64,000 nt of DNA from Phaeosaccion multiseriatum (lineage: Eukaryota; Protista; Ochrophyta, other classes), in the NCBI GenBank assembly GCA_965112735.1, contig OZ218955.1:3658001-3722000 (forward strand). Direction: 5' to 3'. Position 1 is the first letter of the stretch, and every line of letters begins with the position of its first letter. Below are positions 2,307-59,866 of this stretch, in pieces. The notes beneath the pieces are model-generated. The model was not told the DNA's origin and did no database searches. It worked only from the letters and a program-made list of their open reading frames with translations. Both the position numbers and the translations under genes were made by a program.

Positions 2307-2343
<37 letters not shown>

Positions 2344-17873: not shown

Positions 17874-18231
17874 ACGTCTTCACATTAGAGATTGGCATAC
17901 ACTACATGATCTACGCACCCAAGTAGGGCACACGGTAGAGCGAACTTGGCAGAAGAAGTCCCTTAGCTACTTCTCTTCGCTCTAGCCGATATATAGACTC
18001 CCACAGGCTTCAGCGCTTTCGCAAACAAGCCAGCGCCGCCACCGCCTTGTCAGTTCTCTTGCCTGAATGATTAGGCGCCGAAAGATCGACCAACAAGGGC
18101 ATTCTACATGCAAAAGCCCACGTCTCTACTGTGTTGGTCGCATAGCACAGGTTTGAATGAAAGAGAAGGGACACCCCCGGGGATTCGCTGACAGGCTGAG
18201 ACTACCAGCTAGTTTGCTTTGTCTTCTCTCA

Positions 18232-22735: not shown

Positions 22736-22835
22736 CTTCGTACTTGCTCTTGCTCTTGCTGCTGGTGTTGGTACTTCTCGGCGTCGCCGGTCTGCAGCCT
22801 CTCCTTCTCGTCTTCCTCCTCATCTCCCTCTACCA

Positions 22836-23793
22836 CTCCTCCTCCTCCTCCTCCTCCTCCTCCTCCTCCTCCTCCTCCTCCTCCTCCTCCTCCTCCTCCT
22901 CCTCCTCCTCCTCCTCCTCCTCCTCCTCCTCCTCCTCCTCCTCCTCCTCCTCCTCCTCCTCCTCCTCCTCCTCCTCCTCCTCCTCCTCCTCCTCCTCCTC
23001 CTCCTCCTCCTCCTCCTCCTCCTCCTCCTCCTCCCCCTCCTCCTGCACCTCCTCCTCCTCCTGCACCTCCTCCTCCTGCACCTCCTCCTCCTCCTCCCCC
23101 TCCTCCTCCTGCTCCTCCTCCTCCTCCTCCTCCTCCTCCTCCTCCTCCTCCTCCTCCTCCTCCTCCTCCTCCTCCTCCTCCTCCTCCTCCTCCTCCTCCT
23201 CCTCCTCCTCCTCCTCCTCCTCCTCCTCCTCCTCCTCCTCCTCCTCCTCCTCCTCCTCCTCCTCCTCCTCCTCCTCCTCCTCCTCCTCCTCCTCCTCCTC
23301 CTCCTCCTCCTCCTCCTCCTCCTCCTCCTCCTCCTCCTCCTCCTCCTCCTCCTCCTCCTCCTCCTCCTCCTCCTCCTCCTCCTCCTCCTCCTCCTCCTCC
23401 TCCTCCTCCTCCTCCTCCTCCTCCTCCTCCTCCTCCTCCTCCTCCTCCTCCTCCTCCTCCTCCTCCTCCTCCTCCTCCTCCTCCTCCTCCTTCTTCTTCT
23501 TCTTCTTCTTCTTCTTCTTCTTCTTCTTCTTCTTCTTCTTCTTCTTCTTCTTCTTCTTCTTCTTCTTCTCCACCTCCTTCTCCTCCTCCTCCTCCTCCTC
23601 CTCCTTCTTCTTCTTCTTCTTCTTCTTCTTCTTCTTCTTCTTCTTCTTCTTCTTCTTCTTCTTCTTCTCCTCCTCCTTCTCCTCCTCCTCCTCCTCCTTC
23701 TTCTTCTTCGTCTTCTTCTTCTTCTTCGTCTTCTTCTCCTCCTCCTCCTTCTCCTCCTCCCCCTCCCCCTCCTCCTCCTCCTCCTCCTCCTCC
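22836..23793 (+). repeat. Compound (CCT)n/(TTC)n microsatellite, about 960 bp
   Basis: Directly visible. Confidence 0.95.
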
Positions 23794-26700: not shown

Positions 26701-27093
26701 TCAGCCCCCGATGGCAGCCATGACGAGGAGTGACGAGCGAGGCCGAGTATCGGAAAAGGAGGAATGAAGAAAAAAGGGAGAGAAGGAGGGTGCCGGGCAT
26801 CGCTAAAACGCAGGTGCATAGCTAGCTGGCAGATGTACTCGCAGCTGCTGCTACCACCCGCCCGCAGGCTCGCTCGTCTCGGCGTGTGCGTCCTCGCCAA
26901 GGAAGCAAGGCAACATGACCCAAGAGCCCCAGCTACTATGTAATACGCTACGCACCTCGGCGCGCAGGTTGTCGACGTGGTTAAAGAGCTCGGCCACTTC
27001 TTTCATTGTGCGGGTGGGGGTGGGGGGAGACGAAGGCGTCGTGACACTGGCCACGGGTGCACGCATGATCGCTTGTGCTTCTTGAGTCGGCAT
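23794..27093 (-). pseudogene. Truncated paralogue of the Mx/dynamin-like GTPase
   Basis: Same exon structure as 51166-56001 (GEQSSGKSS, DLPG, TKAD). Exon 7 has a frameshifting deletion of about 270 nt, and the gene breaks off in exon 8 at the (GGA)n tract, with no GED. Confidence 0.8.
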
Positions 27094-27145
27094 GGTGCTG
27101 AAGTGAGTTGCTTTCGCAGCAGGAAGGGGGACGCTGCTGCTGTGC

Positions 27146-27185
<40 letters not shown>

Positions 27186-27904
27186 TTTTTTTCAATGCTT
27201 CTTTTCTTCTTTTCTTCTTCCCGCCCCCCCCCTTTGCCCCGCCCTGCCTTTGCTTCTTTTCTTCTTTTTCCCGCCTTTGCTTCTTTTCTTCCATCAATGA
27301 AAAAAATAAACCGCACCATTATTTATAGCCCCTTTTTTTCTCCGGTTTTTTTTTCTCTCTCTCTCTAGTTAGGCACTTTTCCATACATAAATCAATAGCA
27401 GCTAGTTAGCAACAAGACAGTCAGCGGCAGCAGCAGCTGCAGCAGGGGGCTGCACTAATGAATTTTTGGCGCGCACCCAGCCATTAACCCCCACCCCCCC
27501 TCCCTTTCTCCTTTCTCCCCCTAAAGAGCAGCTCCGCAGCGTAGACGCAGACGCCACCTCATCGTGCTTGCGGAGACGCACAGAACTTTTCGCGGTTGAG
27601 ACATGGAGGACATGGAGGAAGCAACAACCGTGGCATTGGGGGAGATGGATGATGGCATTGCAAGAATTTTTTCTTCTGCCATGGGTGGACTTCCAGACAA
27701 GTGGGTCGTTCCATTAAATGATTTCTCCCCTGCGGTGGCGCAACGGCAAAGACTATTGATGATTTGTGGTGTCTCTACCCGAGCAGGGACGAGCATGAGC
27801 GCCCAAGCAAGTGTAGGAACAATCGCAACGGGAGGACGAGGAGGAGGACATGATGGTGGAGTCGCTCCTTTTAGCACTACGGTACAAGAACCAGCAGGCC
27901 GAGG

Positions 27905-28178
27905 GAGGAGGAGGAGGAGGAGGAGGAGGAGGAGGAGGAGGAGGAGGAGGAGGAGGAGGAGGAGGAGGAGGAGGAGGAGGAGGAGGAGGAGGAGGAGGAG
28001 GAGGAGGAGGAGGAGGAGGAGGAGGAGGAGGAGGAGGAGGAGGAGGAGGAGGAGGAGGAGGAGGAGGAGGAGGAGGAGGAGGAGGAGGAGGAGGAGGAGG
28101 AGGAGGAGGAGGAGGAGGAGGAGGAGGAGGTGGAGGAGGTGGAGGAGGAGGAGGTGGAGGAGGAGGAGGAGGAGGAGG
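27905..28178 (+). repeat. (GGA)n microsatellite, about 90 units
   Basis: Directly visible; corresponds to a much shorter (CCT)n at about 50257-50310. Confidence 0.95.
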
Positions 28179-28245
28179 GAAGAACTGCTCTTCTTCAGTA
28201 GAGCCCCGAAGGCGCTCTCCTTCTTCATGTCTTGGACCAGCAGAT

Positions 28246-31200
28246 CTTTGCCTCTCAACCCCCGGCCGGGAGGCGGCCTCCAGCACTCAGTGACCACCGT
28301 GACAAGGAGCCTCTTACCCTCTCCTTGACTTGACCTTGGCTCTGGCTTTACTCGACCTGGCCTGACTTGGTTCGGACTAGACTTGACCTTTGCTCTGGGC
28401 CGCTTGCCGCTCTCCCTCCCCGCCAGCGATGACCGGTGTGTGTTCTTCGAGGACTGCTGCTCGGACTTCGACGCCCTGTGCGATGATGTCGTTCCCTCCT
28501 TGACCTCAGACGGTGAGGATCCGGCGCCCACCCCCATACCAGCCGCTTAGGCCCCTGATAGCGCCAGCGAAGCTCCGGGCTGCTCTTGGTACATGTGGTG
28601 AGAAGCAAGTCAAACGCGCTGGAGGGGCTTAGACGTAGACCTCTCATGTGCATGCCTATTTGACATCCTCCTGCGTATGTGTGTGCATGTGTGTGTATGC
28701 GTTGTATGTGTGTATGTGTGTGTGTGCATGTGTATGTGCCGCTCTCTCTCTCCGGCCTCCTAGCGCTGAGCCATGCACCGAGCTGGAAGACTGCTGCGAG
28801 GACTACGACACTCTGTGCATCTGAACGTCTTCACATTAGAGATTGACATACACTACATGATCTACGCACCCAAGTAGGGCACACGGTAGAGCGAACTTGG
28901 CAGAAGAAGTCCCTTAGCTACTTCTCTTCGCTCTAGCCGATGTATAGACTCCCACAGGCTTCAGGGCTTTCGCAAACAAGCCAGCGCCGCCACCGCCTCG
29001 TCAGTTCTCTTGCCTGAATGATTAGGCGCCGAAAGATCGACCAACAAGGGCATTCTACATGCAAAAGCCCACGTCTCTACATGTGTTGGTCGCATAATGG
29101 GAGCAGGTTTGAATGAAAGAGAAGGGACACCCCCGGGGATTCGCTGACAGGCTGAGACTACCAGCTAGTTGCGATTTCTCTCAAATGCTCCGCCCGGGGC
29201 ATTCGCCTCGTGAGAGGCTTCTTGGGTGGGGCGCATCGCTGACTGCTCTTGCATGGCTCTGTCCTATCTTTATCGGGGGTACTTTCGACACACCGGCCGG
29301 TGCCGATTGCGGCTACACGCTCGACTACAGCAAGTCCGTGATCTGGTGAGGCAGTGGGGAAAGAGCGGGAGAGCTAGAATATCAAGAAGGTAACGATTCC
29401 TGTATCTTCTTCTCGATGGCCTCGCTGCAGTGACTCAGAGGGATGCTCTGTCAGCCGGACTTTGCACGCATTGATGTGTACCTACCCCGCGTCTCCTTTG
29501 GGAGGAAACGAAGAGACCGGCACAGCCAAGTGTAAGAGATGCACTCTCGAAGACGAGGTGCGTAAACACAGTAGGCAGAGTGAACCATGCTGGCCTTGTG
29601 ATATGTTATGCCCCGAGCGGAGGGCCATGGAGGGGCTATTAATCGAGCGTTCCAAGAGCACTAAGCAGCTTAAACAAGCATGCGGTGACGAGGGCTCCTT
29701 TCTCTTCCCTTCAGCCTCCCTCGAGGTCAATACATCTATCCGCTCATGCGAAGAAGAGCGACCTCGCACCGTGCACTCCCTGACTCCCTTCCCCCTACTC
29801 CCTATCAACCGACCCAAAACGCAGACGATCATTGCCGACTTCATGGCCCAGCAGAGCCTTGACCCCGAGTGGTCAGGAGGGCCTCTCGGTGAGGATGGCG
29901 CCGGCTCTTTCCCTTGCTCAGATATGGACATGCCTTGGTCGACGCAAGCCTCGGACGACAGCGCAGCAGGCGACTCCGTTCACCTGCATCGTCGGGCTCC
30001 GCTCCAGCCGCCATCCTCCGGCTCTGATGCTGATACCGACGTGAGCGGCACAGTGGCAACTACTTGGTCGGCGGAGGGCGAAGAGGGGGGGGCTGATGAG
30101 CCAGCAGCAGCGTATGATGGGCCTTTGACGTGTCCAAACCGGCAGTAGCCATCCTGGTGATGAGGCCACTCCGACGAAAGTGCGAGGAGCAGGCGAAGAA
30201 CACCGTCTCCTTCCCTTTCTGTTTCCTCTTCTCCTTCCCCTGTTGGTACAAGGGCACGCCGGCAATAGCAGCACTGAAGGGAAGAGCCAGGCCGGTGGCA
30301 GTGGAGAGAGGAAGAATGCCAGCCGCAGCGCGATGGAGGAGCCGTACAGCAGGTTTCGCTTCGACGCGGGCAGCGAGGCGCCCCCCGACAAGACTTATCG
30401 CGACTCGAACTTCGTCCGCGAGTCCCCTCCCGTGGGCCGTGGGGGAGGGGGAAGTGGTGCTCTGGCCAAGCTCCCGTCCGCGCGACTCTCCCCACCCAAG
30501 CGTTGGTTCTTCAGCAGGCAGCAGTTTGACAACTGCGAGACACGTGGGTGGACGACCACTGTGGGCGCCAGAGGAGCTCTTCACCAACCACACTCAGCAC
30601 ACGCTGCTGTCCGCTGAGACGACTGAGACCACAGACACGGCTGAGACCACTGAGACGGCTGAGACCACTGAGACGGCTGAGACCACTGAGACGGCTGAGA
30701 CCACTGAGACGGCTGAGACCACTGAGACGGCTGAGACCACTGAGACGGCTGAGACCACTGAGACGGCTGAGACCACTGAGACGGCTGAGACCACTAAGAC
30801 GGCTGAGACCACTGAGACGGCTGAGACCACTGAGACGGCTGAGACCACTGAGACGGCTGAGACCACTGAGACGGCTGAGACCACTGAGACGGCTGAGACC
30901 ACTGAGACGGCTGAGACCACTGAGACGGCTGAGACCACTGAGACGGCTGAGACCACTGAGACGGCTGAGACCACTGAGACGGCTGAGACCACTGAGACGG
31001 CTGAGACCACTGACACGGAGGGTTCGGGGTGGAGCGGCTCGTCGCTTGGGGCCACGGACGGACAATGGGACTCTCTCCGCGTCATAGCGGCGGCGGCGGG
31101 GCTGGCAGGGGTGGTGGCGGTGTGTAGGGCGGCGGCTGGGAGGTGCGGCAGAGCCCCTGTTGACTGTTGAGTGATTCCATTTCAGTACACTGCGCGTGTG

Positions 31201-32043
31201 GAGGAACTTGGGAGGAGTGATTGATTGCTGTGCGTACGTGCTTCCGTATCTACCCTTCCTAAGGCAGCGATTCCTAAAGGGTAGTTGCGTGTTGCCTACT
31301 CGCTTTACATACGTAGTGTTGTCTACTTTGCATACATACAGTAGTGTGCTGCCGAACTACACCCCCATGCACATGCGCGAGGTGGAGCCCTTCACACGCT
31401 CCACTCCGCTCAGTGATTGCCCGGCTGGCAGACAGAGGAAATCCTTATCGGTCTCCCTCCCTACACGCCAACCCCTGCACTTAGCTGAGCTTAGCATAGG
31501 GTTAGGTAAGTAGGCAGCTTAGCTTCGCTAGAAACAGACGCGCACATGGACTCCGCTACCATGTCAAGCTGTGCGCGTCGTCACCTCCACTTCACATCTA
31601 CCCCGCTGCTTGTCGGTCTCACTTTCACGCCGCAGCACGAGGGACTCCGAGTCGACACGACGGGATTGCCGAGGGTGCTCTGCCGTTCGCTCACTCCGGC
31701 ACAGCGTTACGGAATGACTGAGACGGCCCTCCTCTGGCCCTGGCTGCTGGCCCCGCCCCCACCGCGAATAACGGATTCGAACCCTCGCCTGGGCCCACAT
31801 CCAGGTCGTCGCTCGACTCGCCCCACCTGCCGCTGCGGTGCCTTTTCATGATCACGGGACGAAGACGGTCCAAGCTCTCCTTTCCTCCGAGCCCTCCCAA
31901 CCGCACACGCGCCCACACCCGACACCTCGGGCCCGCAGACGTCAACTCTGTGGTGACTCACAGGGGCCCGCAAGTCGACGCCTTGGAGGTTGACCATGCC
32001 ACCCCATTCGCTCGTGCAGCCCTCACTCACGAGCACCACCGGC
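28246..32043 (+). repeat. Segmental duplication block X, copy 2
   Basis: Direct near-identical copy of 17290-21135. Confidence 0.95.
29185..31170 (+). pseudogene. Frameshifted copy of surface protein C
   Basis: Relative to copy 1 there is a 2-nt deletion near 30135 (ccaaacc vs ccgaaaacc) and a 1-nt insertion near 30395 (gacttatc vs gactatc). The ETTETA array is 3 units shorter. Confidence 0.7.
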
Positions 32044-41565: not shown

Positions 41566-43755
41566 CCTACCGCAAACCCTCCCTCCCCCTCCTCCATCCA
41601 CTGCCATCCCCCTGCCCACCTGCCCCTCCCCAGCACAAGACCAGCGTAGACAGTGCCAAGCCATGTGTGGATTCTCACCTCGACCCCATGCTCGCCCACC
41701 GCCGCGAGCATATGGCGAAGCAGAAACTCTCTCAACGGGCCGCAGGCATCCGCATTGCCAAGCAAGGGGTGGGGATGGCAGCAGAGGGGCACGGGCATGG
41801 GAGGAGAGGGGAAGTCAACCCACACACAAGGTACGCCTGGACTGGGGATGGATGGTAGGGGATGGCAGGGGGGAGGGGGGGCGTATAGAGGGCTCGATCG
41901 TTTATCCTCTGAGGTTCTCGATGGAGGGAGAGAGAGGAGGAGGAGGAGGAGGAGGAGGAGGAGGAGAAGGAGGGGGAGGAGAGAGGAGAGAGGAGAGAGG
42001 AGAGAGGAAAGAGCCGAGAGAGAAGGAAGAGTATGGCAGGGGTAGAGAGAGTGGGCCGTGGAAGAGGGATGAGCATGGGTAGTAGACAGGCGTGCCTCTC
42101 ACCTCTGAGTGGGCAGAGCGGGCGAAGCTCTCAGGGCTCTCTCCCTCTCTTCTGTTGCATGTTTGTCTCTGTCTAACCTTGTGCCTCTTTTTGTCTCTCT
42201 CCCTCTCTTCTGTTGCATGTTTGTCTCTGTCTAACCTTGTGCCTCTTTTTGTCTCTCTCCCTCTCTCCCTTTTCTTGTCTTGCGAAGGGACTTGGTGGAG
42301 AGCGACTGTGACAGCGATAGCAGCGGCTCTGTCTCACTCGTCGGTGACGACGAGGATGGCAGTGAGGAGGAGGAGGAGGAGGAGGAGGAGGAGGAGGAGG
42401 AGGAGGAGGAGGAGGAGGAGGAGGAGGAAATGGACCAACGCGCATCCCGCGGCTGGACACACGGTGAGACGCACGACTACCACACCACGCAGGCCAGCTC
42501 CGGTCGTGGGCCCCCCGCAGGGGCAGGGGCAGGGCAGACGAGCTTCTCTCGGCCGTCCTCCTCCCCGCCCTGTCATAGGCAATACAAGCACTTCTCGTCG
42601 AGGCACTCTGGCCTGACGAGTAAGGGGCAGCACCAGGAGCAGCGGGAGGAGGAGGAGGAGGAGCGGCGGTATGGCATGGGTCAAGGCCGGCACGCGAGGA
42701 AGGGTTTGAGGGGCGGGAAGGGCAAGTGGGAGGCTAATGTCAGCAGCAGCAGTGACAGGGGCAGCGAGGAGAGGGGTGGCGCGGCGAAAGGCGGGGGCGG
42801 GGGTAGGCCTCCCTTCTGCACCGGAGGGAGGGGGGACATGGAGGAGAAGATGGCGGAGATGACCACAGCAGGAGGTAAGGGAAGCGCTGCCTCTCCCTCC
42901 TCCCCAGCAGGGGCCTTCTATGCCCTCCCCGAGAGAAGCAAGGGTCGAGGGGGCATGGATGATGACCTTCCGCAGGCACTGACCAACCACAGCACATTGA
43001 GTCGCCTTATTATGTGGCAGAAGGAAGCGGTCTGTCACTCTTCGAGGCTCAGTGAGGCGGGGACGGTGTGCGATACGGCGTTTCCCGAGCACTGCAAGAG
43101 GTACAAGAGCTTCCGGGATGGTCAGAGGGAGAGCGCACTGAGAGGGGTCCGAGCCAGCTCCATACTGGGACGACGAGCCGGGGGGAGAGGACGAGGACGA
43201 GGACGAGGACGAGGAGGACGAGGACGAGGACGAGGAGGAGGAGGAGGAGGAGGAGGAGGAGGAGGAGGAGGAGGAGGAGGGCGGCGCTTCGTTGATGACT
43301 ATGCTGATAGCGATGACGGAGTGGTAGAGGGAGATGAGGAGGAAGACGAGGAGGAGAGGCTGCAGACCGGCGACGCCGAGAAGTACCAACACCAGCAGCA
43401 AGAGCAAGAGCAAGAGCAGCACCATGGCCAATATTCATCCATCGGGGGCCTCCAGCCTCCAGGTGCTAGCTGGATGGGGAGAGGAGGGAGGGGGGGGTGG
43501 GGGGGGCAGGAGTGGGGAAGGGGAGGTCCTCAGCAAAGCGCTTTTGGGGGTCGGCCAAACACTTTCGGAGGGCCCTCGCCCCATTATCGAGGGGCAGACG
43601 CAAGCGCCACCCTAGGTGAGGGAATGGGTAGGGGGAGGGAGGGAGCTGCCCCTCGCCCTGCATTCCGGGAGAGTGGGGGGGAGGTGAGGAGGCAGCAGCA
43701 GCAGGGGGGAGAGGGGAGGGCGAGGCCACGCTACTGCACAGATCGCACGCTGTAG
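40554..43755 (+). CDS. Hypothetical low-complexity protein, spliced
   Basis: Long ORFs 40554-41415 (GTGAGT donor) and about 42288-43755, with a probable middle exon at about 41640-41830. No domain recognised. Confidence 0.5.
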
Positions 43756-44748
43756 GAGGATGGAGGGAGAGGGCGAGAGAGAGGAGAGAGGAAGAGGAGG
43801 AGGAGGAGGAGGAGGAGGAGGAGGGGGGAGGGAGGGAGGGAGGGAGAGGGAGGGAGAAGGGGCGGAGGGGCGATGACGTTGGTCTCGTTTCTCGGCAGCG
43901 ACGAAGGCTGTGGTATCTCTATCTGCATCTCATGGTCGCTGGCACGCCAACTTTTGTCGTTAGTACATAAATGGATGGATGGATGGGAAGCGGAAGGAGG
44001 GTTTTGAAACAGGGGAGGGAGGGGGGGGGTTGACTGTGGAAGTATAGATGTATGTAGGGGGGAGGGAAGTTTTAGTTTTAGTGGGGGGAAAGGGCTCAAC
44101 AGTTTTGGTGGGGTATTTTTTGTGTGTATCACGAGAGAGGAGGGGGACAGGCAGGCGCAGCACGCCTTGGCCGATACCTCACACGCACATGCAGAACACA
44201 CGCACACTCAGTCACTCACTCGGTGCTCAGCGCTCAGCGTACATGCACCACACGCACCTCGTGTCAGCGGCAAGCAGCACAAGAACAAGAATAACAAAAT
44301 GTATGGCGTTACATAGAGCAAGTCAATTGAAGTTACCTCGTGTCAGCGGCAAGCAGCACGAGAATAACAAAATGTACCACGTTACATAGAGCAAGTCAAT
44401 TGAAGTTTGCCGCTATTGAAGCCCCGTGCCTTGTTTTTGTAAAGTGGAACAACCCCTGGGGGAGCGAGGTGTCAGGTGTCGGGTGTCACTCCTCGGGTAG
44501 GCTGCCTTACTGCCTTCAATTGCCATCGTGTCCTGCTCCTCCTCCCTCCCTCCCTCCTTCCATGCGCTTTTCCTCACCATGAAGGGGAAAAAGGACGCAT
44601 GGACGGCCTCTCCATTTCTTTGACATAGTGCGCGTGGTGCTGAGTGTCATTGCTCTATCCCTAGCACCGCACCGCCCTCCCTTCCACCCTTCTTTCCCTT
44701 CTCCTGTGCCCGCTGCTGCCACGTCCTCGCGCCCCCAAAGGGGCCTCC

Positions 44749-47163
44749 TCATCCTCGTCCCGGTCCAACGTCCTCTTCCTCCTCCTCCTCCTCCTCCGCG
44801 TCGTCGCCGTCGTCGTGGAGCTGCTTTCTCCCCTGTATGCAGAGCAGGTACTTGTTCTGGAAGAAGAAACGCTCCTCCGGGCAGGGGGGGTGCGGGTCGA
44901 TGTAAGGTACCTGAGGGAGGGAGAGGGAGAAAGGGGGGGGAGAGAGAGAGACAGAGAGAGGAGGGAGGAAAAGGGAGAGAGATAGAGAACGAGCGAGAGA
45001 GAGAGAGAGGGAGAGAGAGAGAAGCGTATGGGCAGGCACAGAGAGGCACTTCAGAGAGGAGAGCAAAAGGTGTAGTACTCGAGTCCTTCGCCAACCCACC
45101 TCTCCCTCCCTCCTTCATCCCGACCCCCACCCACCAGTGATTGGTACGGATTGAGCTTGGCCCCTTGCGTGACTCTTGCCCCGAACTCCTCGAGCGCCTT
45201 CTGATCAGCGCTAATCTCCTGCTCGCTCCATGCCGTGAAGCACAAGGGAGTCTCATCGTCCAACAGCCCGGCCACGGCGCTACTCCAGGAGGCAATTAGG
45301 CTAGACGGGTGAGGATGACCGAGGAGAAGATGGTCCAGCTCATCCCCATCAGCAGCAGTTGGCGATACAGAGGAAGGTTTCCCGCGCGGTAACGCCTTGT
45401 TGGCGTCGTGTATGCCCGAGTTGAAGACGAGAGCGAGGTGTGGCTTGACGTAGGATGGGTCTGAAGCCACGTACTCTTCGTACCTCATGCCGCGCATAAA
45501 CACTCTGCGTTGCCTGCCCGCCGCGCGGCAGTGGGGGCATGTCTGCATGACGATGGCACGGGCGCCACAGGCACAGCGAGACGGCGAGACATACCCTGCC
45601 ACATCCGGTCCTACAAAGACGATGTCTATGTTAGCGAGCCCCTCGCACTCGGGCAGCACTAAGTGCAGCACCTCCTCCCACACGGCGCTCACTGATAGCT
45701 CGAAGGTGGGGCCTGCCCCAATCACATGCAAGACGAGGGTGGGCCCCAGGCTCGCCAAGGTGCGTCCAGAGACCGTGCCCGTATCACCAACTGCTTGGCC
45801 GTAAAAGTGCCTGAGGGCGATTACGGCAGTCAGTGCCTGGCCCAGCATCTTGGTCAGCAGCAGAGGGAGCTCCCAAGGCAGCCGATTCAGCTCAAGGGAT
45901 GGGTCCCTCCAGCGTAGGTACTCCCCCCAGCCAGCCACGGGGAGGTCGCAGATGGAGTGCTTGGGTCTACCGTCGGGGCCCAAGTACATGTCCGGCTGCC
46001 AGCTGAACTCCTCGCCCTCCGTCTTGAAGAAATTATCGGCGAAGAGGTTGATGCCTAAGTGCCTCTGGTAGGTGTTGCAGTCTTGCTCGGAGTGTTCGTG
46101 TTCACGGCCTGGAAGGTGGGCCTCACAGCGCCAGTCCCTGGGGCGGGAAGGAAGGAGGAAGGGAGGGAGGCCGCTTCATTGAAACGAGGCGGGGGAGGGC
46201 ACAGAGTCGCCCTGCCCTGCTGCTCACCGAACTGCATTGTCACCCGCTTCGTTGCCTCGCCCATCCAGTAGAAGTAGCCCCCCCCCCCCAACATTTTCCT
46301 CCATGGCATCGCTCAACCCTCTCTCCGTCTGTGTCACTCACTCACCAGTGGCACTTTGGACACGGCTTCAAAGTTGTGGGGCAAGAGACGCGCGTGGCCA
46401 GGCAGCACACGCAGTGCGCTTCCAATGTGATCATATTGGACTCCTCCTTGCTCAGGTGGCCAGCCCCACCCCTGCTGTGGGTGTGGAGGGAGGCGACCTC
46501 GAGCAGACGAGTCATTCTATCTTGCCACCGCTGAGAGTTTACGGCCATGTGGGCCACAATGACCTCTTTCACCCCGCTGTGGGCAGGAGGCGCTGAAGTG
46601 GCGGCATGCTCTTGCAACCACTGTGGAGAGCTGTTCAGCGTGCGAAAGAGTTTGCAGCTGCTCTTGTGCGCTCGCTGGACCGCCTTCTGGCCTGAGGTGG
46701 GGGAAGGGGGTACAGAAGTTTAGGTTTGGGGGAGGAGGGCAGCCATCATCCCCTTTCAATCAGAGGATCCCCACTCACATCTGATATTGCAGAACCACGC
46801 TCTCTCGCATCCCCCGCACTTCTTGAGCGGATCCTCACCCGCTGGCGGTACTCGGTAGCAGTTGAAGCAGGCGGCTCCTGTGTACGCCTCTGCCAAGGTT
46901 CTCGCAGCCATAGGACACACGGGATGGGGGAATGATGGGCGAGATTTTTATTTATTGACATACATTGTAATAGTAGAAGGAGTGTTGGTGCTCCAAGGCT
47001 TGGCTTACAAATGGCCCTTCCGGACTGCTCTCCCTCCTCTCTTCCCCTCCTTAAACTCTCCTTCCCTCCCCCTCCACTCCCGCCAGGCTTCTATAGCTTT
47101 CCCTCTTTGTCTCAGCTTCCATTTTTGCCGCATATTCCTCTTTGCAGCCCCTCTCCTGCTCAT
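44749..47163 (-). CDS. MYND zinc-finger protein with MSS51/ZMYND15-like C-terminal domain
   Basis: Spliced CFNC...LKKCGGCERAWFCNIRC|QKAVQRAHKSSCK is a MYND finger. Downstream LHVIGA...DIVFVGPD...PHLALVFNSGIH...SWS...FTAWSEQE...NPYQSL is MSS51-like. The start at 47163 is inferred. Confidence 0.75.
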
Positions 47164-48595: not shown

Positions 48596-49037
48596 CTCTC
48601 GCTCTCTCGCTCCGTCTTTCGCTCGCGCTCTCTCCACCTCTCTCTCTCTCTTCTCTATCTCTCTCATGTCTCTGTCTCTCGCCCCCTCTCTCTGTCTCTT
48701 GCTCTCTCTCTTGCCTCTCCGACCCACTGCCTACTGTTGGCTCTTCCTCTCTCTCTCTCACTCGTGCTCTGTGTCCGTCTCTCTTTCCCTCTCTCTCTCT
48801 CGTTTGGCCTCCTCTCCCTCTCCCCCCTCTTATTCAGCGTGACAGCATCAGCGCTGACGGCTGCAGGTGTGCGCAAGCAGGAGGAGCAACAAAAGGGAGC
48901 AGCAGCAGCGGCTGAGTTGTGTTGCGGACATGGCCCGGACAGGGCTCAGGAGGGTCAGGAAGAAGGCGCTGGGCATCGTCAATGGTCAGAGAGAGAGAGC
49001 AGCAGGAGGGGGCGGGGGGGTAGAGGAGAGCTTAGCT

Positions 49038-49086
<49 letters not shown>

Positions 49087-50065: not shown

Positions 50066-50763
50066 TCAGCTCAATGTGCACAGCAGCTTGGAGGAGCAAC
50101 ACGAGGAGCAACACCGAGAGTTCGGCTTCGAGGGACCCGGCGTCTCGGTCTTCATCGCTCCGTCACCAGCGCTCCGTCCCCCAGAAGGGTCTGCTGGTCC
50201 AGGACCTGAAGAAGGAGAGCGCCTTCGGGGCTCTACTGAAGAAGAGCAGCTCTTCCCTCCTCCTCCTCCTCCTCCTCCTCCTCCTCCTCCTCCTCCTCCT
50301 CCTCCTCCTCCTATTACTACACTTCTTGGTGGCACTACTTGTGGAGGCTTCACAGTGCCACCACTATCAGGGCGTGCTGGTGGTACCACCGGCCGTAGTG
50401 TGCTAAAAGGAGCGACTTCACCATCATGTCCTCCTCCTCCTCCCGTTGCGATTGTTCCTACACTTGGGCGCTCATGCTCGTCCCTCCTGCTCTGGCGCTG
50501 GTAGAGACACCACAAACCATCAATAGTCTTTCCCGTTGCATAACCGTCGGGGAGACGCCATTTAATGGAACGACCCACTTGTCTGGAAGTCCACCCATGG
50601 TTCTTCAGCGCTCTCTCGAAAACATTTCTTGCAATGCCATCATCCATCTCCCCCAACAATGCCACGGTTGTTGCTTCCTCCATGTCTCAACAACCGCGAA
50701 AAGTTCTGTGCGTCTCCGCAAGCACGATGAGGTGGCGTCTGCGTCTACGCTGCGGAGCTGCTC
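50066..50763 (-). CDS. Possible hypothetical protein divergent from the GTPase gene
   Basis: 205-aa ORF with a globular-looking first 70 aa; the duplicated copy at about 27520-28240 is disrupted by indels. Confidence 0.3.
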
Positions 50764-51165
50764 TTAAGGGGGAGAAAGGGAGGAGGGGGGGGGGGGGGTT
50801 AGCTAATGGCCGGGTGCGCGCCAAAAATTCATTAGTGCGGCCCCCTGCTGCAGCAGCTGCTGCCGCTGACTGGCTGCTATTGATGAATGTATGGAAAAGC
50901 AAGTGCCTTGGTAGATGAGAGAGATCGTGCTGAAAAAAAAGGAGAAGGAAAGGGGTTAAATGGTGCGGTTTGTTTTTTTCATGATTGATAGAAGCAACGC
51001 GGCGCGGGAAAAAGAAGAAAAGAAGGAAAGGGCGAAAAGAAGAAAAGAAGCAATTTTGAAGATCGTGCTAAGCATGCTGCACACAGCAGCAGCAGCAGCA
51101 GCAGCAGCAGCAAGCACAGCAGCAGCGTCCCCCTTCCTGCTGCGAGAGCAACTCACTTCAGCATC

Positions 51166-54100
51166 ATGACGACTCAAGAGCGTGCACCCGTGGCCAGTGT
51201 CACGACGCCTTCGTCTCCCCCCACCCCCACCCGCACAATGAAAGAAGTGGCCGAGCTCTTTAACCACGTCGACAACCTGCGCGCCGAGGTGCGTAGCGTA
51301 TTACATAGTAGCTGGGGTTCTTGGGTCATGTTGCCTTGCTTCCTTGGCGAGGACGCACACGCCGAGACGAGCGAGCCTGCGGGCGGGCGGGTGGTAGCAG
51401 CAGCTGCGAGTACATCTGCCAGCTATGCACCTGCGTTTTAGCGATGCCCGGCACCCTCCTTCTCTCCCTTTTTTCTTCATTCCTCCTTTTCCGATACTCG
51501 GCCTCGCTCGTCACTCCTCGTCATGGCTGCCATCGGGGGCTGATCCTCGCATCTCTACGCACTACCGACCCAGATCCAGCGTGAAGGCATAGATGACCTA
51601 GGTGGCGGCGAGCATGGATTGGATCTTCCCCGCATCGTGGTGGTCGGTGCGTAGTTCGCTGTGGCTCTTCGATCCTCAGTGTGGGGTTGGATCCTCTCTG
51701 CCTCCCGCGTCTTGCTCTCCCTGTTTGCCCCAGCCCGCAGTCCAGGCAGATGGCTCGTCCTAACTACCACTCACACACAGCCCCTCCTCGATGGCGTCCC
51801 ACCCCCCCCCGCGCCACCCGCCCTCCTTTTCTCGCTCCCCCCACCCACCTGCCTGCTCTCCGTCCCTTCTCCTTCCCTTTCCATCAGGTGAGCAGTCGTC
51901 CGGCAAGTCTTCTCTTCTCGAAAGGTGCGAAGCAGCTGGCTCCGCGAGACTCTATCAGCCCGCCCTACTCTCAATGCCCTTCTCGTTGTGTTTGAACTTC
52001 CCTCCCCACTCTCCTCCCCTTTACCTTGCTTGTTGGCTTTTGGCCCTTGCTTGGCTCGTCCTCCACCCTGCGTCTGACCCCTCGCGCGCTCGTTTCCCTT
52101 CACCCTTTTAAATGCATGCCCATGATGCCTCCATGCCTCCTCCCCCCCCCCCCAACCACGGCTAGACTCTCCGGCGTCCACTTCCCGGAGGGGACGGGCA
52201 CGACGACTGTTTTCCCCACGGAGGTTCAGATGCGGTACAAGGAGGGGGATGGCTTCTCAGCCTCCGTTTGGTTGGACGCCCTCAACGGCGGCAACGAGCA
52301 ACGCCGCAACGAAAGGACGCTAACTTCCCCACAAGAGGTGAGGGGGCAGGCAGGGACCCTGGTGACGCGGCCCGCCCTGCTGGCTGTTGCAGACTAGGAA
52401 GCCCAAGCAAGCAGGAGGGAAGGGCAAAACCGACGTTGTACTTCATCATCATGCCTCTGTTTGTATTCGAAAGAACACCAAAGCAAGCCAAAGAGCAGAA
52501 TCATCCGCGCTTGCTTGCACGCCATTTCCCTCACCGCAAGTGTCGCTCTGTCTCCTGCTTGATATTGCAATCTTACATGTCATGGAGTTGCAAGAACTAA
52601 TGTGTGATTTCGTCGATTTTGCCTCTTTGTTTCTGTTTCTTGGCTTCGCTGCGTGTGCGTGTGCTGGCTGTGTCTCAAGTTGACCGAGGCAATCAAAGAC
52701 CTGACGACAATCCGAAAGCAGGAAATGGGGATAGTAGGCGAATCCCCCGAGAAGGTCTTCTCTGCATACGGCATGAAGATAAGGATCGAGAACAAGGATT
52801 CAGCCAACCTTACGGTCATCGACTTGCCCGGCTTGATCGTCACCAGCGGCTCCAGCAGCAGCTTCTCGTCTGGGGCTGTGGCCCCCTCAGCCCAGGAGGG
52901 GGAGGAGGAGACGAAAGCGGGAGAGGAAACTCTCATGCACGATCCCAGGAAGCTCGTGGAGAAGTACGCCGAACCCCACAACACCATCATTCTCGTCCTC
53001 GCGGAAGGCACCCAAGACATTGATGTGAGTCGGAAAGAGGGCCCAAGGACTCGCATGAGGACATAGCTACAATACCGGTGCACGCTTGTGTCCCGCGGCA
53101 TGGTGGCTGATGGTGTTAGACGAGTGATGGTGTGCGTTGCGTCGTCACCGATGAGAAGAAGCTCGGAGCTATGCGTGACGTGACGCCCTCGACTCACCCC
53201 CCCCCCCACCCCTCTTGTGCCCTTCTCGCTCCATGCTTTCGTGGGCTGGTCGTCTCCTTCTCCTGCTGCATTGGATGGTTGGGCGGCAAAAGAACGCTAA
53301 AGCCTTCGGGTTCGTCAAGGACATGAACTGGCGCAATCGTGCCATTGGCGTAGTGACCAAGGCCGACTTGGTGGGAAAACAAGGGTGCATGTCGACGGCG
53401 TCTGCCAAAGAACTCCTTCTCCACACGAACAGCGAAGACAGCAAATACTGGCTCCAAGACGGGTGGGTAGCCGTGGATTCCAGCAAGAGCGAGGAGAAGG
53501 AGATGGAGTTTTTCAATGGAGACGACTACTTCAACGAGCTGCTGGGCGAGGGCGCCAACCTCGGTGTCAAGGCGTTGGGCTCGAAGCTTTCGACGCTACT
53601 CGACCGGCGCATCCGTGTTGAGCTCAAAAGGCTGGGCCCTAAGGTAAGATGCTACTGCCGAAGCACGAGGACAAGTACAAACAGAGGGCAGAGAGTCATC
53701 TCTCCTCGTTCTTTCCCTCTCTCATTCAATTCGTGCGTGTGTGAAGTCTGCTGTGGTGGCCGACGCTCAGCGTGGAGCATCCCCTCCCCCTCTCGTACTC
53801 GACTCCTCACGCCCGCTGCTGTGCTTCCCACTTGCTCTTGTGTGTCTACTTGTGGGCCCCGTCCTTGGCGACCATCGCTCGGTTCTTCCCACTTCAGATT
53901 CACAGCACGCTTAAAGAGGCACAGGAGGGGCTGAGGCAGACTGAAGAGGACTACTCTGACCTGGAACCGGCCGCGCAGTATACAAAGGTGGCCGAATTCA
54001 AGTCGAAGTTTGGTAGAAAAATGAGTGAATCACTCCTAAAGAGAGCAGGACGCGCTGACCACAATCTCATGATCGCGGCGAACAAGGCTCATCCCCACGT

Positions 54101-56001
54101 AGCTGGAACTTTCAACGGCCTGCAGCAAGCATTCCGGCAAAGTATTCTTGATACGCACCCATTGGGGAATGAAGCCGTGAGTTCGAGTGATAGCGCTGCG
54201 AAGGAAACAGCGCTGCTTGAATCTGTCCAGAAGGCCCTGTCCCACTCCGAGCTTTTTCTTGCTGGCGTCCTCTCGAACACGTGAGTAACCGCACGTTGTC
54301 TTTGCTGACGTTCGAAGTCACTCTTTTGGACCAGACATACATTTGAGAGGGCTTAGTCTAGTCCAACAGAGTGACTTCCAAACAGGCGACACTTGCCTGG
54401 CTGCCGCCTTCCCCCTCTAGCAGCAGCGTTGGGCGTTACTTCCGGCCGGCTCTGGCTGTTCTGGATACTGTGATGCATCCATCTGTGCCTGCTTTGCCCC
54501 TCTCTAACTTTCTGACCGCTCTTTCCTCCCTCCTCGCGATTCTACTTGGTCTCACTACTACTCGATACTACGGGACATACACGATTCTCTCACGCCGCCG
54601 AGGACAGCAACTATGACTTTCAGACTGAATGGAACACTAACATCCTATCCAAATGGGAGGACCCGCTGAAGCGGATGACCGAGGACTTGGAAGAAGCCAT
54701 ATTACTGTACGCCGATGTCCTTCTCGATCTACCCCTCTTCTTCCATGGCAAAAAGCTTCCTCATCTCCAGAAGGAGCTACTCGGCGGTTTTCAGAAGGTA
54801 AGATGACCGGACGATGTGCTTGCATGGCGTCGCTCTGCTGCTTCCCTTGCTTCGTGGGGCGGAGGAGCAATGCTGTAGCAAGTAGTGGACTGGATGCTGG
54901 TTGGTTTGTCTTGAACGCCTTTCCCTTGAGAAGGAGGGAATAGAGGATAGAGGATGACCTGTAGAGGAAGGAGGGCGGAGGAGAAGAAAGCTCCTCATGG
55001 TTGTGATCGTGCAAGTATGACGTGAAGCAAACGACTGCGGCCTAAGTCTCCGCTCCAGGAGAGACGACCATCGTGGAAGGAAGACAGCCGATTTTCTCAC
55101 TCTATTTCCTTTTCCCCTTATCGCTCACTCTGTTTCCTTTTCTGCCCTATCGCCCCCGTTGCCCCGGCGAACGCGCCTCTCCCCCCGACTCTATTGTTCC
55201 TTGCTCAACGCCTCAACGCTCTACCTATGCTTAATTAGGTGTTGAAGATGAAGCGTAAAGACCTCAAGTCGCACCTCGATCTCATGCTAGATCGTGAATC
55301 CAATCCGATCACAGTGTGGGAAGCACAGGATATAGGCGAGAAGCGGTTGCAGGTAAGATAGACAAGTCTGCCCTCACTTTGATCACGAGTGAGCGAGACA
55401 AACGGCGGCTCCCAACACACGAGCCCACACACATGTCACTCCCCCCGCTTCTCCTTCGGAGCAGAGACTCCTCGCTCCAGTAGCTAGCTCGAAGCAAGGG
55501 GGGGAATCACAGCACATGCTGTTCTGGGCTCGAGGATCACTACTTGCCGCGTCGCTGCAAGCCCCCTTCTGTTTGGCTAACCACCAACTTCCACCTTTCC
55601 CCTCTGCTGCGTACCTCTCCCTCCCTTGTTTCCTCGCCGCGACGACTCGGTGATGGTCACCAATGCAGGAGCTTGAAATCCTACAAAAATCCTCGAGAGT
55701 GAGCTTGGATGCTATGAATCTCGTCAGAAAAATCGTACAATACTTCAACATCGCGGCAGCTCGCTTCGTAGATGTCTCAGTGCAGTTTTTGCAGCAGTTT
55801 CTCATCGACCAAACACTCCAAATTCTCACAGAGGAAGGCCTGTTTCTCAAAGGCTACACAAACCTCAACAATGACACAAGAGTGGAGGAGTGCTTAAAGG
55901 AGGGTGGAGAAAGCAGACAAGCCCGCGATAAGTTGAAGAAAAGGGTCAATGCCCTCCAGAGCATGGAGGACAAGGTCGCCAACGCGAATGCCGAATACTG
56001 A
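51166..56001 (+). CDS. Mx-like dynamin-family GTPase (G domain, middle domain, GED; no PH domain), 10 exons
   Basis: Exons about 51166-51288, 51574-51646, 51888-51924, 52166-52337, 52680-53024, 53292-53643, 53898-54280, 54608-54797, 55239-55352, 55669-56001. Motifs LPRIVVVGEQSSGKSSLLE, LTVIDLPG, GVVTKAD, and GED-like YFNIAAARFVD...LKE...RDKLKKRVNAL. Confidence 0.88.
54314..54379. repeat. Intronic inverted repeat (23-bp arms, 21/23 match)
   Basis: gaagtcactcttttggaccagac ... gtctagtccaacagagtgacttc. Confidence 0.75.
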
Positions 56002-56731
56002 GCGGACAAGAGCGCAGCTGAAAACAGCGCAGCAAACGAAGCAGGCAGGCAGGACGGGGCCCAGGGGGGGGGGGGGCTGAGGTGAAGAGGAGAGAACGCG
56101 GGGCGGCGGAAGGGGAGGGGGGGCATGGGATGATCAGTACAGCGACAAGCAGTGGCCTCGCCTTTATTGAGCGGCCGCGGTTTTGTCGGGTTATCGCTCG
56201 TGGTCGTGGCGCATTTGTTATTCATGAAAGGAAAGAGGAAAGGAAGGACAGGGGTGCGCGCAGCGAAACTGGCACGAGCAAAGCAAACGGCGCCTTCTTG
56301 GCAGGGCAGGCAATGGTGCCTGCCTCTCACCAAGCGAAGCGTCCTTTCAGTAGTAGGCACCAGGACAGTAGGCAGGAACAGAGCGGCGCCTTCTTGGTAG
56401 GGCAGGCAACGGTGCCGGCCTCTCACTAAACGAAGCGTCCTACAGTATCAAGTCAAGCGATCAATGAAGTTAGGTTACACTTGTGGTCCTTCACGACTCT
56501 TGGTCTTCATTCCCCAACCCTCTCTTCCTCTCTCCCACCGATCGCCATGGAGTGGGCCCCAGGCTCGCCAAGGTGCGTCCAGAGACCGTGCCCGTATCAC
56601 CAACTGCTTGGCCGTAAAAGTGCCGGAGGGAGAGCACGATATGATGATGATGATGACAATGATGATGGTGATGCTGCTGATGGTATAATGATGATACTGC
56701 TGCTGATGATGATGATGATGAGGACGACGAC

Positions 56732-58015
56732 GAGGAGGAGGAGGAGGAGGAGGAGGAGGAGGAGGAGGAGGAGGAGGAGGAGGAGGAGGAGGAGGAGGAG
56801 GAGGAGGAGGAGGAGGAGGAGGAGGAGGAGGAGGAGGAGGAGGAGGAGGAGGAGGAGGAGGAGGAGGAGGAGGAGGAGGAGGAGGAGGAGGAGGAGGAGG
56901 AGGAGGAGGAGGAGGAGGAGGAGGAGGAGGAGGAGGAGGAGGAGGAGGAGGAGGAGGAGGAGGAGGAGGAGGAGGAGGAGGAGGAGGAGGAGGAGGAGGA
57001 GGAGGAGGAGGAGGAGGAGGAGGAGGAGGAGGAGGAGGAGGAGGAGGAGGAGGAGGAGGAGGAGGAGGAGGAGGAGGAGGAGGAGGAGGAGGAGGAGGAG
57101 GAGGAGGAGGAGGAGGAGGAGGAGGAGGAGGAGGAGGAGGAGGAGGAGGAGGAGGAGGAGGAGGAGGAGGAGGAGGAGGAGGAGGAGGAGGAGGAGGAGG
57201 AGGAGGAGGAGGAGGAGGAGGAGGAGGAGGAGGAGGAGGAGGAGGAGGAGGAGGAGGAGGAGGAGGAGGAGGAGGAGGAGGAGGAGGAGGAGGAGGAGGA
57301 GGAGGAGGAGGAGGAGGAGGAGGAGGAGGAGGAGGAGGAGGAGGAGGAGGAGGAGGAGGAGGAGGAGGAGGAGGAGGAGGAGGAGGAGGAGGAGGAGGAG
57401 GAGGAGGAGGAGGAGGAGGAGGAGGAGGAGGAGGAGGAGGAGGAGGAGGAGGAGGAGGAGGAGGAGGAGGAGGAGGAGGAGGAGGAGGAGGAGGAGGAGG
57501 AGGAGGAGGAGGAGGAGGAGGAGGAGGAGGAGGAGGAGGAGGAGGAGGAGGAGGAGGAGGAGGAGGAGGAGGAGGAGGAGGAGGAGGAGGAGGAGGAGGA
57601 GGAGGAGGAGGAGGAGGAGGAGGAGGAGGAGGAGGAGGAGGAGGAGGAGGAGGAGGAGGAGGAGGAGGAGGAGGAGGAGGAGGAGGAGGAGGAGGAGGAG
57701 GAGGAGGAGGAGGAGGAGGAGGAGGAGGAGGAGGAGGAGGAGGAGGAGGAGGAGGAGGAGGAGGAGGAGGAGGAGGAGGAGGAGGAGGAGGAGGAGGAGG
57801 AGGAGGAGGAGGAGGAGGAGGAGGAGGAGGAGGAGGAGGAGGAGGAGGAGGAGGAGGAGGAGGAGGAGGAGGAGGAGGAGGAGGAGGAGGAGGAGGAGGA
57901 GGAGGAGGAGGAGGAGGAGGAGGAGGAGGAGGAGGAGGAGGAGGAGGAGGAGGAGGAGGAGGAGGAGGAGGAGGAGGAGGAGGAGGAGGAGGAGGAGGAG
58001 GAGGAGGAGGAGGAG
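56732..58015 (+). repeat. Perfect (GGA)n tract, about 1.28 kb
   Basis: Directly visible; preceded by a (GAT)n to (GAC)n to (GAG)n gradient. Confidence 0.95.
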
Positions 58016-58486
58016 AGAGTGAGAAGCAGGACATGCATGGATTGTATAGAGGGACTTGGGCCAGTAGAGAGTAGCGCGCAGAGTCGAAAGTGAGGGAATC
58101 AATTCGCGTTTTAGACACTTCTGTCCCCACTCGAGGTGGCACTCAAGGTGGAGAGACGCGAAATGTTTATTAATTAAATTGATTGACCCCCAGCATGGGG
58201 CAGTCTACCTACATGTGTAGGCTTGTATGGAGCTTTGGCTTGACTTCATCGTCTCACCAAGTTGTCTTTGTCTCTGGAGAGGAAGGGGAGAGCTCGCTGC
58301 CACAGAAACCAAAGCCAATTCGATTCCTGGGCGGGAGGGGACGGTCGAGTCAACCCACATACCCGTCCCTACCTTCACTAGTACAGGAGCACGGTAGAGT
58401 CAACTCAGACAGTCATACCACTGGACTGGAGAGGGGCGTCAAACGCTGGCTTGACCAGCGCAGGAGCAGAGCCATCTCAAACTGTA

Positions 58487-59866
58487 TTAGGCGACCCCCG
58501 GTTTTTGAGCTTCGGGGCCCGTGGACCTTATCTCTCCAGTGCGCTCCAGCTCTCCCCTAAAGTAGTCGATGGTGTGTTTGATGCCCTCCCTCACCTCCAC
58601 CCGCGGCTCCCAATTGAGTTGTCCTTTGGCCACCTCAATGTCCGGTCTACGCTGGCTGGGGTCGTCTTCGGTGGCAGGCAGGTACACAATCTCGCTCTCG
58701 GAGCCCGTCAATTCCTTAACGAGCTCGGCGAAGGCACTAACGGTGTACTCCTCGGGGTTGCCGATGTTGACGGGCTGTGAGTAGTCGCCATTCATCAAAG
58801 ACACTAGACCCTCCACTAGGTCATCCACGTATTGGAACGATCTTGTCTGCTCGCCGGTCCCATAGATGGTAATGTCCTTCCCCTGCAGGGCCTGGATGAT
58901 GAAGTTGCTCACCACCCGACCGTCGTTGGGGTGCATGCGGGGCCCAAAAGTGTTGAAGATGCGAGCCACTCTGACCTCCAAGTGCTCCTTGCGTTCGTAC
59001 GCATACATCATCTGTTGGGTGGGGGGGTAGGTCGGTTGGTTGACAGAGGGAAGTGAAAGAGTGAGTGGATGGGTGGTGAATGAGTGAGTGGGTTATTCAT
59101 GGGTGAGTGAGGGAGGGAGTGGGCACAGAGCACTGACACACACACGCACATATATATATATACGGCTTACCGTCTCTGCCACCCTCTTCCCTTCATCGTA
59201 GCACGCCCTGGGCCCGATTGGGTTCACGTTACCCCAATACGTCTCCTTCTGGGGGTGCTGCTCTGGGTCGCCATAGACCTCGCTCGTGGAGGTGAGTAGC
59301 ATTCGGGCCCGTGTCCGCTTGGCGAGGCCCAGCATGTTGAGCGTCCCTTGCGTGTTTGTCTTGATAGTCTTGATGGGGTTGAATTGATAATGGGGGGGGG
59401 AAGCGGGGCATGCCAGGTGGTAGATTTGGTCGATCTCCAGCATGACGGGATTGACGACATCATGCACGATGAGTTGGAAGTTTGGATGTCCCACCCACTT
59501 GTGCACGTTTTGCTTCCTGCCCGTGAACATGTTGTCCACCACGATGACATCGTGCCCCTGCTTCATCAGCTTGTCCACCAAATTGCTCCCCACAAACCCA
59601 CAACCACCCGTTATAAGGATGCGCTTCCTCTCCTTCTCGGACAGGGTGATTGTGGGCGGGGCTGGCGGGCACACGACCGAGGCGCCTCTGGCCGCGTCGT
59701 CTCCACCCCCCTCAGGTTCCACCACGGCATGAGCCTTCCCCAAAAGCTTTGCTAGATCCTCCAACCTCTCTCCCTGGGCAGCGACTGTCTCGGACAACCC
59801 CTGCACCGCATGGGCCACCGCCTGGGAAACGAGAGCTGAGATCTGTTCCTGTTCTCCTGGACCCAT
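58487..59866 (-). CDS. UXS1: UDP-glucuronate decarboxylase (UDP-xylose synthase)
   Basis: Motifs [43 protein letters not shown]|[30 protein letters not shown]. Intron about 59170-59012. An extra 5' exon is possible. Confidence 0.95.

Follow-up and report, generated by a model that had tools for sequence, protein, structure and literature searches.

Why should two copies of one gene differ more in their exons than in the introns between them? The question is raised by a 64,000-nt stretch of the genome of the ochrophyte Phaeosaccion multiseriatum (contig OZ218955.1, positions 3,658,001 to 3,722,000), referred to below as the window and numbered from its first nucleotide. At 51166-56001 of its forward strand lies a gene (gene A) predicted to encode a large GTPase of the dynamin superfamily, and 23 kb away lies an inverted, partial duplicate (copy B). 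A sequence-only reading of the window had held that the exons of this pair diverge faster than the introns and had seen in them an algal Mx-like restriction factor engaged in an arms race. The account favored here, with a probability of about 0.5, is that a divergent gene of Mx/DRP4 build was partially copied, that gene conversion between the copies left a mosaic of divergence, and that the GTPase (G) domain evolved rapidly.

The observations on which the sequence-only reading relied are accurate. Intron 3 (51925-52165), 241 nt long, differs between A and B by only three substitutions and a single 3-nt indel, and the residue counts reported for exon 4 (7 of 57 differ, PEGTG/PKGKG among them) and exon 6 (25 of 117) are exact. 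The indels in exons 1 (15 nt) and 5 (9 nt) are in frame, and the G1, G3, and G4 motifs are kept. Across 51166-53643, exons differ at 60 of 1092 positions (5.5%) and introns at 22 of 1285 (1.7%); the contrast is significant by Fisher's exact test (p = 4e-7) and by a circular-shift test that leaves the clustering of mismatches intact (p = 0.002). However, faster exon divergence holds only for this part of the gene, that is, relative to introns 1-5. Over the whole shared gene, the values are 70/1204 (5.8%) for exons and 88/1858 (4.7%) for introns (Fisher p = 0.21, circular-shift p = 0.36), and in the 3' part the contrast is reversed, with exons at 8.4% and introns 6 and 7 at 11.5% (Fisher p = 0.12).

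The background against which these values should be read was taken from a stricter pairwise alignment, restricted to sites at least 5 nt from gaps. Non-coding divergence was 5.0% upstream of the gene, 7.0% in intron 6, 9.2% in intron 7, and 4.4% in the other pieces of the composite duplication that contains B, for a pooled background of 109/2068 (5.3%). Exons 4-6 do not depart from this background (48/813, 5.9%; p = 0.52), whereas introns 1-5 are an outlier (19/1135, 1.7%; p = 2e-7). Because the exons sit at background divergence and introns 1-5 do not, the contrast is mainly an effect of regional homogenization. Hypermutation of the exons, whether CpG-driven or strand-biased, was considered and rejected, as transitions and transversions are about equally frequent in both exons and introns, and Rfam yielded no known RNA in the introns that might account for their conservation.

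The similar introns belong to a homogenized zone (Table 1) that also takes in exon 1, exon 3, and the central part of exon 5 but not exon 6. The zone holds the longest runs of identity between the copies (259, 158, 148, and 129 nt). None of 5000 shuffles reached a run of 259 nt, and the shuffled maximum averaged 94.5 nt. A two-state model of divergence fits far better than a single rate (log-likelihood -798 versus -872) and describes a baseline of about 2.3% interrupted by dense clusters of 10-75 bp with about 29% mismatch. These clusters number 12-17 per kb outside the zone versus 1.9 per kb inside. Such close similarity within a segment whose flanks are far more diverged, together with identity runs beyond chance, is the pattern that gene conversion between inverted paralogues would be expected to produce. 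In mammalian Mx paralogues, localized conversion affects the region of the bundle signaling element (BSE) and GTPase domain, with tracts that extend into introns (PMC4687636).

The history of the pair can be outlined accordingly only in conditional terms. A gene of Mx/DRP4 type would first have been duplicated in part and in inverted orientation, giving a copy B that retained promoter-side DNA and an open G-domain frame (exons 1-6), and A and B would have come to differ by about 5% at non-coding sites. Later gene conversion between the inverted repeats would have largely re-homogenized the segment from exon 1 to intron 5, bringing introns 1-5 to 1.7% and leaving a few short substitution clusters in exons 4 and 5. 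Rapid evolution of the G domain, either weakly constrained or under diversifying selection, would have left both frames intact, and B would have lost most of its stalk and its whole GED through a deletion into a GAG tract. Gene conversion is the presumed cause of the mosaic; a biochemical activity of the products and any antiviral role are likewise presumed.

Several findings weigh against this account. Even inside the zone, exons show 2.4 times the divergence of introns (31/741 versus 22/1285; Fisher p = 0.0013, circular-shift p = 0.014), an excess that conversion tracts with random ends do not predict. There is also a deficit of synonymous change, as only 7 of 60 changed codons are purely synonymous against an expected 26% (p = 0.005). 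Moreover, a 3.8-kb direct repeat that brackets the composite duplication is only 1.4-1.5% diverged and so is as young as introns 1-5, which makes a single young event followed by local hyper-divergence possible. Finally, the comparison covers two sequences only, a basis that gives no phylogenetic evidence for conversion or for the direction of change. The exon excess within the zone and the young repeat keep two other readings alive, one invoking positive selection and one in which the clusters were made during the rearrangement or imported.

Estimates of selection place the pair near or above neutrality. Over 395 aligned codons, the Nei-Gojobori method (NG86) gives a non-synonymous divergence (dN) of 0.066, a synonymous divergence (dS) of 0.038, and a ratio (omega) of 1.76 (Fisher p = 0.10), with values of about 3.8 in each of exons 5 and 6. 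A maximum likelihood (ML) pairwise codon model (F3x4) gives an omega of 1.47 (p = 0.26 against 1), 2.28 for exons 4-6 (p = 0.057), and 2.19 for exons 6-7 (p = 0.12). Within the homogenized zone (exons 1-5), the ML value is 1.02, so the exon differences there are not enriched for amino acid changes. The likelihood profile rejects values of 0.6 and below (p = 0.005) and of 4 and above (p = 0.011), leaving an interval of about 0.76-3.1; the lower limit excludes ordinary purifying selection on the A/B pair. Positive selection as the driver of faster exon evolution is hinted at rather than demonstrated; the p value of the synonymous deficit rises to 0.05 when adjacent changed codons are merged into 32 events. 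Clustered multi-nucleotide changes reportedly inflate omega, according to work by Venkat, Hahn and Thornton in 2018. Taken together, these values mean that amino acid change in the exons has proceeded at about the neutral rate or somewhat above it, as in protein evolution that is fast and either weakly constrained or diversifying. With omega at 1.5-1.8 and not significantly above 1, rapid protein evolution is plausible, and the proposed arms race is not demonstrated.

An arms race nevertheless heads the alternatives, as a tentative explanation that is less than likely. It holds that the pair is young, its true age being given by the 1.7% of introns 1-5, and that recurrent positive selection, for example in a host-virus conflict, acted on the G-domain exons of one or both functional copies. 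The excess of non-synonymous over synonymous change, the preservation of frame in both A and B, and the equally low divergence of the direct repeat flanking the same rearrangement are all consistent with it. So is the position of many differences next to conserved residues of the G-domain interface, whose roles are known from dynamin (PMC5084822, PMC3561337), and turnover of Mx-like genes has been read elsewhere as a sign of conflict (PMC11789081). Apart from the modest significance of omega and of the merged codon counts, the main difficulty is that introns 6-7, the upstream DNA, and the other duplicated pieces have diverged as much as the exons or more, which a young age leaves unexplained.

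At the other extreme, B may have been dead since its birth and decaying freely, with patchy conversion and a few multi-nucleotide mutations falling in exons by chance. An omega that does not differ from 1, a copy without stalk and GED, and a baseline with dense clusters everywhere except in the zone would all fit such a wholly neutral history, and the clusters within the zone (three exonic versus one intronic) are too few for significance. The distribution of indels argues otherwise. Exons 1-6 (1101 nt) contain two, both multiples of three, against 10 in introns 1-5 (1377 nt), of which two are multiples of three, and 37 in all aligned non-coding DNA (2724 nt). The probability of two or fewer exon indels is 0.014 at the rate of introns 1-5 (about 8 expected) and 4e-5 at the overall non-coding rate (about 15 expected). 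As the only two exon indels are in frame, both reading frames have been kept. No stop codon interrupts exons 1-6, which is weak evidence by itself (P = 0.13-0.40), and B retains the donors and acceptors of introns 1-7, all seven pairs. Of the earlier suggestion that B was functional while it diverged, the supported part is that it kept its reading frame and splice sites.

Additional results run counter to free decay. An omega of 0.6 or less, as would be expected if A were constrained and B neutral, is rejected, and the enrichment of differences in exons persists in circular-shift tests (p = 0.014 to 0.002). B exons also score slightly better than those of A against Pfam dynamin models in three of three comparable exons; because they match at least as well, the changes are not simply decay of B. 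An attempt to polarize exon 6 against human MxA made A ancestral at about five sites and B at two, while Pfam scores pointed the opposite way, and it was abandoned as too weak for assignment to a lineage. A purely neutral origin of the pattern is improbable.

The amino acid changes are not spread evenly over the G domain. Two of the densest clusters flank residues of the dynamin G-domain dimer interface, as located by motif alignment. In the first, PEGTG/PKGKG, changes fall at both x positions of the P-x-G-x-G switch I motif, the glycines of which bind the catalytic cation in dynamin (PMC5084822). The second, TQDID-NAKA / ILDIA-NDET, lies around the position that corresponds to D180 of dynamin, a residue known to act on the P-loop in trans (PMC3561337). 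Catalytic residues are unchanged between A and B: G1 (GEQSSGKS), G3 (DLPG), and G4 (TKAD) are identical, and a Thr run follows P-x-G-x-G in both. B has about nine more lysines than A. By this alignment, the changes appear to concentrate beside conserved interface residues. It is conceivable, if rather doubtful, that B is a short paralogue of the DRP4A type in which selection has driven the interface loops (the switch I x positions and the surroundings of the D180 equivalent) apart while conversion homogenized the rest, and that it serves as a regulator, decoy, or antagonist-escape variant of A.

Considerably less probable is an origin of the dense clusters outside the pair or at the birth of B, either by import through template switching or ectopic conversion from Mx-like paralogues or complementary DNA, with homology in exons only, or by error-prone synthesis during the composite rearrangement. 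The composite around B does consist of inverted pieces in changed order, one junction of which shows microhomology, and cluster edges fall within a few nucleotides of both ends of intron 5. However, imports from functional paralogues should be rich in synonymous differences, whereas the clusters consist almost entirely of replacements; the exon 2 island extends into intron 2; and no third copy was found in the window and no third variant in contigs aligned at 95%.

A single sample, probably the one that was assembled, underlies all four public DNA runs. Even so, the notion that B was created by an assembly error, in which an allele or haplotype of A was joined at the wrong place, deserves almost no credence, since contigs of all four runs (X1-X4) hold both A and B, B-specific joints (a 65-nt deletion in 4/4 runs) and B variants occur as separate contigs, word depth is higher in shared than in A-only stretches by a factor of about 1.3 to 2.4, and the flanks and 3' end of B differ from those of A.

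What, then, is the protein whose gene was duplicated? Family searches were run exon by exon for A and B separately. Exon 5 matches the Pfam Dynamin_N model (A, E = 1.2e-5, 25.8 bits; B, E = 1.2e-6, 29.1 bits; the cut-off of 27 is set for whole proteins), as does the open reading frame (ORF) around exon 5 (27.4 bits). Exon 10 matches the GED model (E = 1.1e-6, 29.2 bits; cut-off 21.4). Exon 6 aligns with the start of Dynamin_M below the cut-off of 28.5 (A, 15.3 bits; B, 20.2 bits), and in a language-model atlas its neighbors are Dynamin_M fragments, as those of exon 10 are GED clusters. Exons 7-9, 228 codons in total that would be filled by stalk helices, match nothing in Pfam, the PH domain included. 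These results agree with the earlier assignment to the PH-less dynamin-family GTPases.

Beyond this level, relationships fade. Among solved structures, Mx1/Mx2 are the top true relatives of exon 6, with marginal expectation values (E = 0.02-0.5); an exon 6 profile finds them at 0.02-0.4 and one Dnm1-type dynamin at 0.045, while exon 5 prefers plant DRP1A and Drp1 equally weakly (E = 0.04-0.2). Overall, single exons match solved dynamins, Drp1, Vps1, and DRP1A among them, only at E values of about 0.02-1. A HMMER search of 1.8 billion representatives with the exon 5 ORF returned no match at 1e-3; the query contained a low-complexity insert as well as 22 residues from outside the exon. Exon 6 gave no match in a word-indexed search whose length filter leaves out full-length proteins, and exons 5 and 6 found no related locus in metagenome contigs and no viral relative in viral contigs. 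NCBIfam gave nothing useful. The predicted product of gene A is a very divergent, PH-less large GTPase of the dynamin superfamily with the Mx/DRP4 build of G domain, helical stalk, and GED. It is clearly not a conserved housekeeping Vps1/Dnm1 orthologue: marginal exon matches, the empty search at 1e-3, and the rejection of omega values of 0.6 and below all contradict Vps1/Dnm1/DRP3 orthology, a placement that would have undone the sequence-only reading.

The model of gene A rests on reading frame, splice signals, and conservation between A and B, and its exon lengths sum to a multiple of three. The public runs that hold the stretch are the four DNA data sets mentioned above, with no RNA run among them. 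The model comprises 10 exons and 2121 coding nt (706 codons plus stop), separated by nine introns that are all GT-AG with donors of the GTGCGT, GTGAGT, and GTAAGA types (Table 1). The acceptor of exon 8 was chosen because the nearer AG at 54622-23 runs into a stop codon and was discarded. Immediately behind DLPG, both copies contain a Ser-, Gly-, and Glu-rich insert of about 20-25 residues (52833-52910 in A), at a position where other dynamins have a short switch II.

Table 1. Positions in the window of gene A, copy B, and associated segments
Feature	Coordinates	Strand	Remarks
Homogenized zone	51085-53295 (B, 27175-25045)		2.2 kb, exon 1 to intron 5; introns within at 1.7%
A exon 1	51166-51288	+	41 codons; ATG at 51166, donor GTGCGT; by position, N-terminal helix of the BSE
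A exon 2	51574-51646	+	Ends LDLPRIVVV, then split Gly codon; in-frame alternative acceptor 6 nt downstream
A exon 3	51888-51924	+	37 nt; G1 / P-loop GEQSSGKSSLLE; B identical
A exon 4	52166-52337	+	Switch I (P-x-G-x-G, TTT) and variable loop; 11 nt and 7 amino acid differences from B
A exon 5	52680-53024	+	G3 (DLPG), low-complexity insert behind G3, loop around dynamin D180 equivalent
A exon 6	53293-53643	+	G4 (TKAD), end of G domain, start of middle region; 29 nt and 25 amino acid differences from B
A exon 7	53898-54280	+	Stalk
A exon 8	54608-54797	+	Stalk; acceptor 54606-07
A exon 9	55239-55352	+	38 codons
A exon 10	55669-56001	+	GED and stop codon
(GAG)n tract	56700-58020	+	0.7 kb beyond A stop codon; likely partner in the junction at which B is cut short
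B exon 1	26956-27093	-	15-nt in-frame insertion
B exon 2	26598-26670	-	
B exon 3	26324-26360	-	G1 as in A
B exon 4	25914-26085	-	
B exon 5	25305-25640	-	9-nt in-frame deletion
B exon 6	24697-25047	-	
B exon 7 remnant	24245-24365	-	271-nt deletion and G-run insertion
B exon 8 stub and GAG tract	22830-23838	-	About 14 codons fused to about 1 kb of (GAG/GAA)n through GGAGGA microhomology

Self-BLAST of the window delimits the duplication: 50190-54647, comprising the upstream region and exons 1-8, recurs as 28244-23799 on the reverse strand in three main blocks of 78-88% identity, gaps counted. No counterpart of exons 9-10, and hence of the GED, was found for B anywhere in the window. The G-run in exon 7 of B (about 24290-24305) is 14 nt long in the window, whereas a run X1 contig shows 18 nt, and the frame of B differs between the two lengths. 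The composite to which B belongs spans 7.1 kb (21135-28245) and is assembled from inverted segments of the 43.2-54.6 kb region; their permuted order, in the orientation of A, is 50190-54647, GAG tract, 43168-43414, 43781-44716, and 48898-49060. Its bracketing direct repeat occupies 17293-21137 and 28246-32043. A further kilobase-scale (GAG/GAA)n tract is found near 42.3-43.1 kb. Just before the GAG tract downstream of A, an 87-nt piece at 56552-56638 repeats 45739-45825 with 95-98% identity; the latter lies in an ORF with an MSS51 C-terminal domain (45051-45989, reverse strand).

The neighboring ORFs are of a kind usual in nuclear DNA, and nothing in them points to viral sequence inserted near the dynamin genes. 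Those at 735-3830 (reverse), 5091-6176 (forward), and 59093-59866 (reverse) encode protein kinase domains and an NAD-dependent epimerase/dehydratase domain. From 9400 to 16360 runs a long tandem array, its units of about 300 bp being 70-87% alike.

The class of gene that A resembles is already known, because Mx-like genes have been described in green algae, in an Mx / MxF / DRP4C lineage (PMC11789081), and short partial duplicates and Mx gene conversion have also been published. Like A, members of this lineage have a G domain, stalk, and GED but no PH domain, are about 700 residues long, and show turnover in copy number. Membership of A in this lineage is putative; exon 6 matches Mx1/Mx2 marginally, and exon 5 matches DRP1A/Drp1 as weakly. 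Vps1, Dnm1/Drp1, and plant DRP1/DRP3 share the same domain families and lack of a PH domain; however, they are strongly conserved, whereas A barely matches them and tolerates an omega near 1 or above.

Copy B has its own parallels. The short DRP4A genes of plants are partial duplicates of DRP4C for which gene conversion has been suggested (PMC11789081). Like them, B consists of a G domain and a truncated stalk derived from a full-length gene of the same genome, in its case the neighboring one; B keeps its G-domain frame and is evidently homogenized with its parent. Unlike them, B ends in about 1 kb of (GAG/GAA)n and may be frameshifted in exon 7, and it may be a pseudogene. The conversion between mammalian MxA/MxB and Mx1/Mx2 is localized to the 5' part that encodes the BSE and GTPase domain and extends into introns (PMC4687636). 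The homogenized 5' segment of A and B is comparable: together with its introns it takes in the first BSE helix and the first half of the G domain, and the 3' part is more diverged. In the present case, conversion is deduced from two sequences of a single genome.

The primate red and green opsin genes are a precedent for introns that are more alike than exons, as conversion homogenizes the genes and selection keeps the exon differences. In A and B, too, introns 1-5 have diverged less than exons 4 and 5, which lie among them. Unlike the opsins, however, the contrast within the zone rests on three or four short clusters, omega is about 1, and one copy is truncated.

A general lesson is that exon divergence in excess of intron divergence between young paralogues should first be compared with the divergence of the remaining duplicated non-coding DNA, as it is the introns that are unusual here. 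Mx-like dynamins outside animals are a recent finding, and any function in algae is conjectural. The combination of a full-length gene with a frame-preserved partial copy limited to the G domain, the two set apart by amino acid changes that arose at a neutral or faster rate beside the dimer-interface residues, would provide a testable pair, both for a response to viruses and for the modulation of long forms by short copies.

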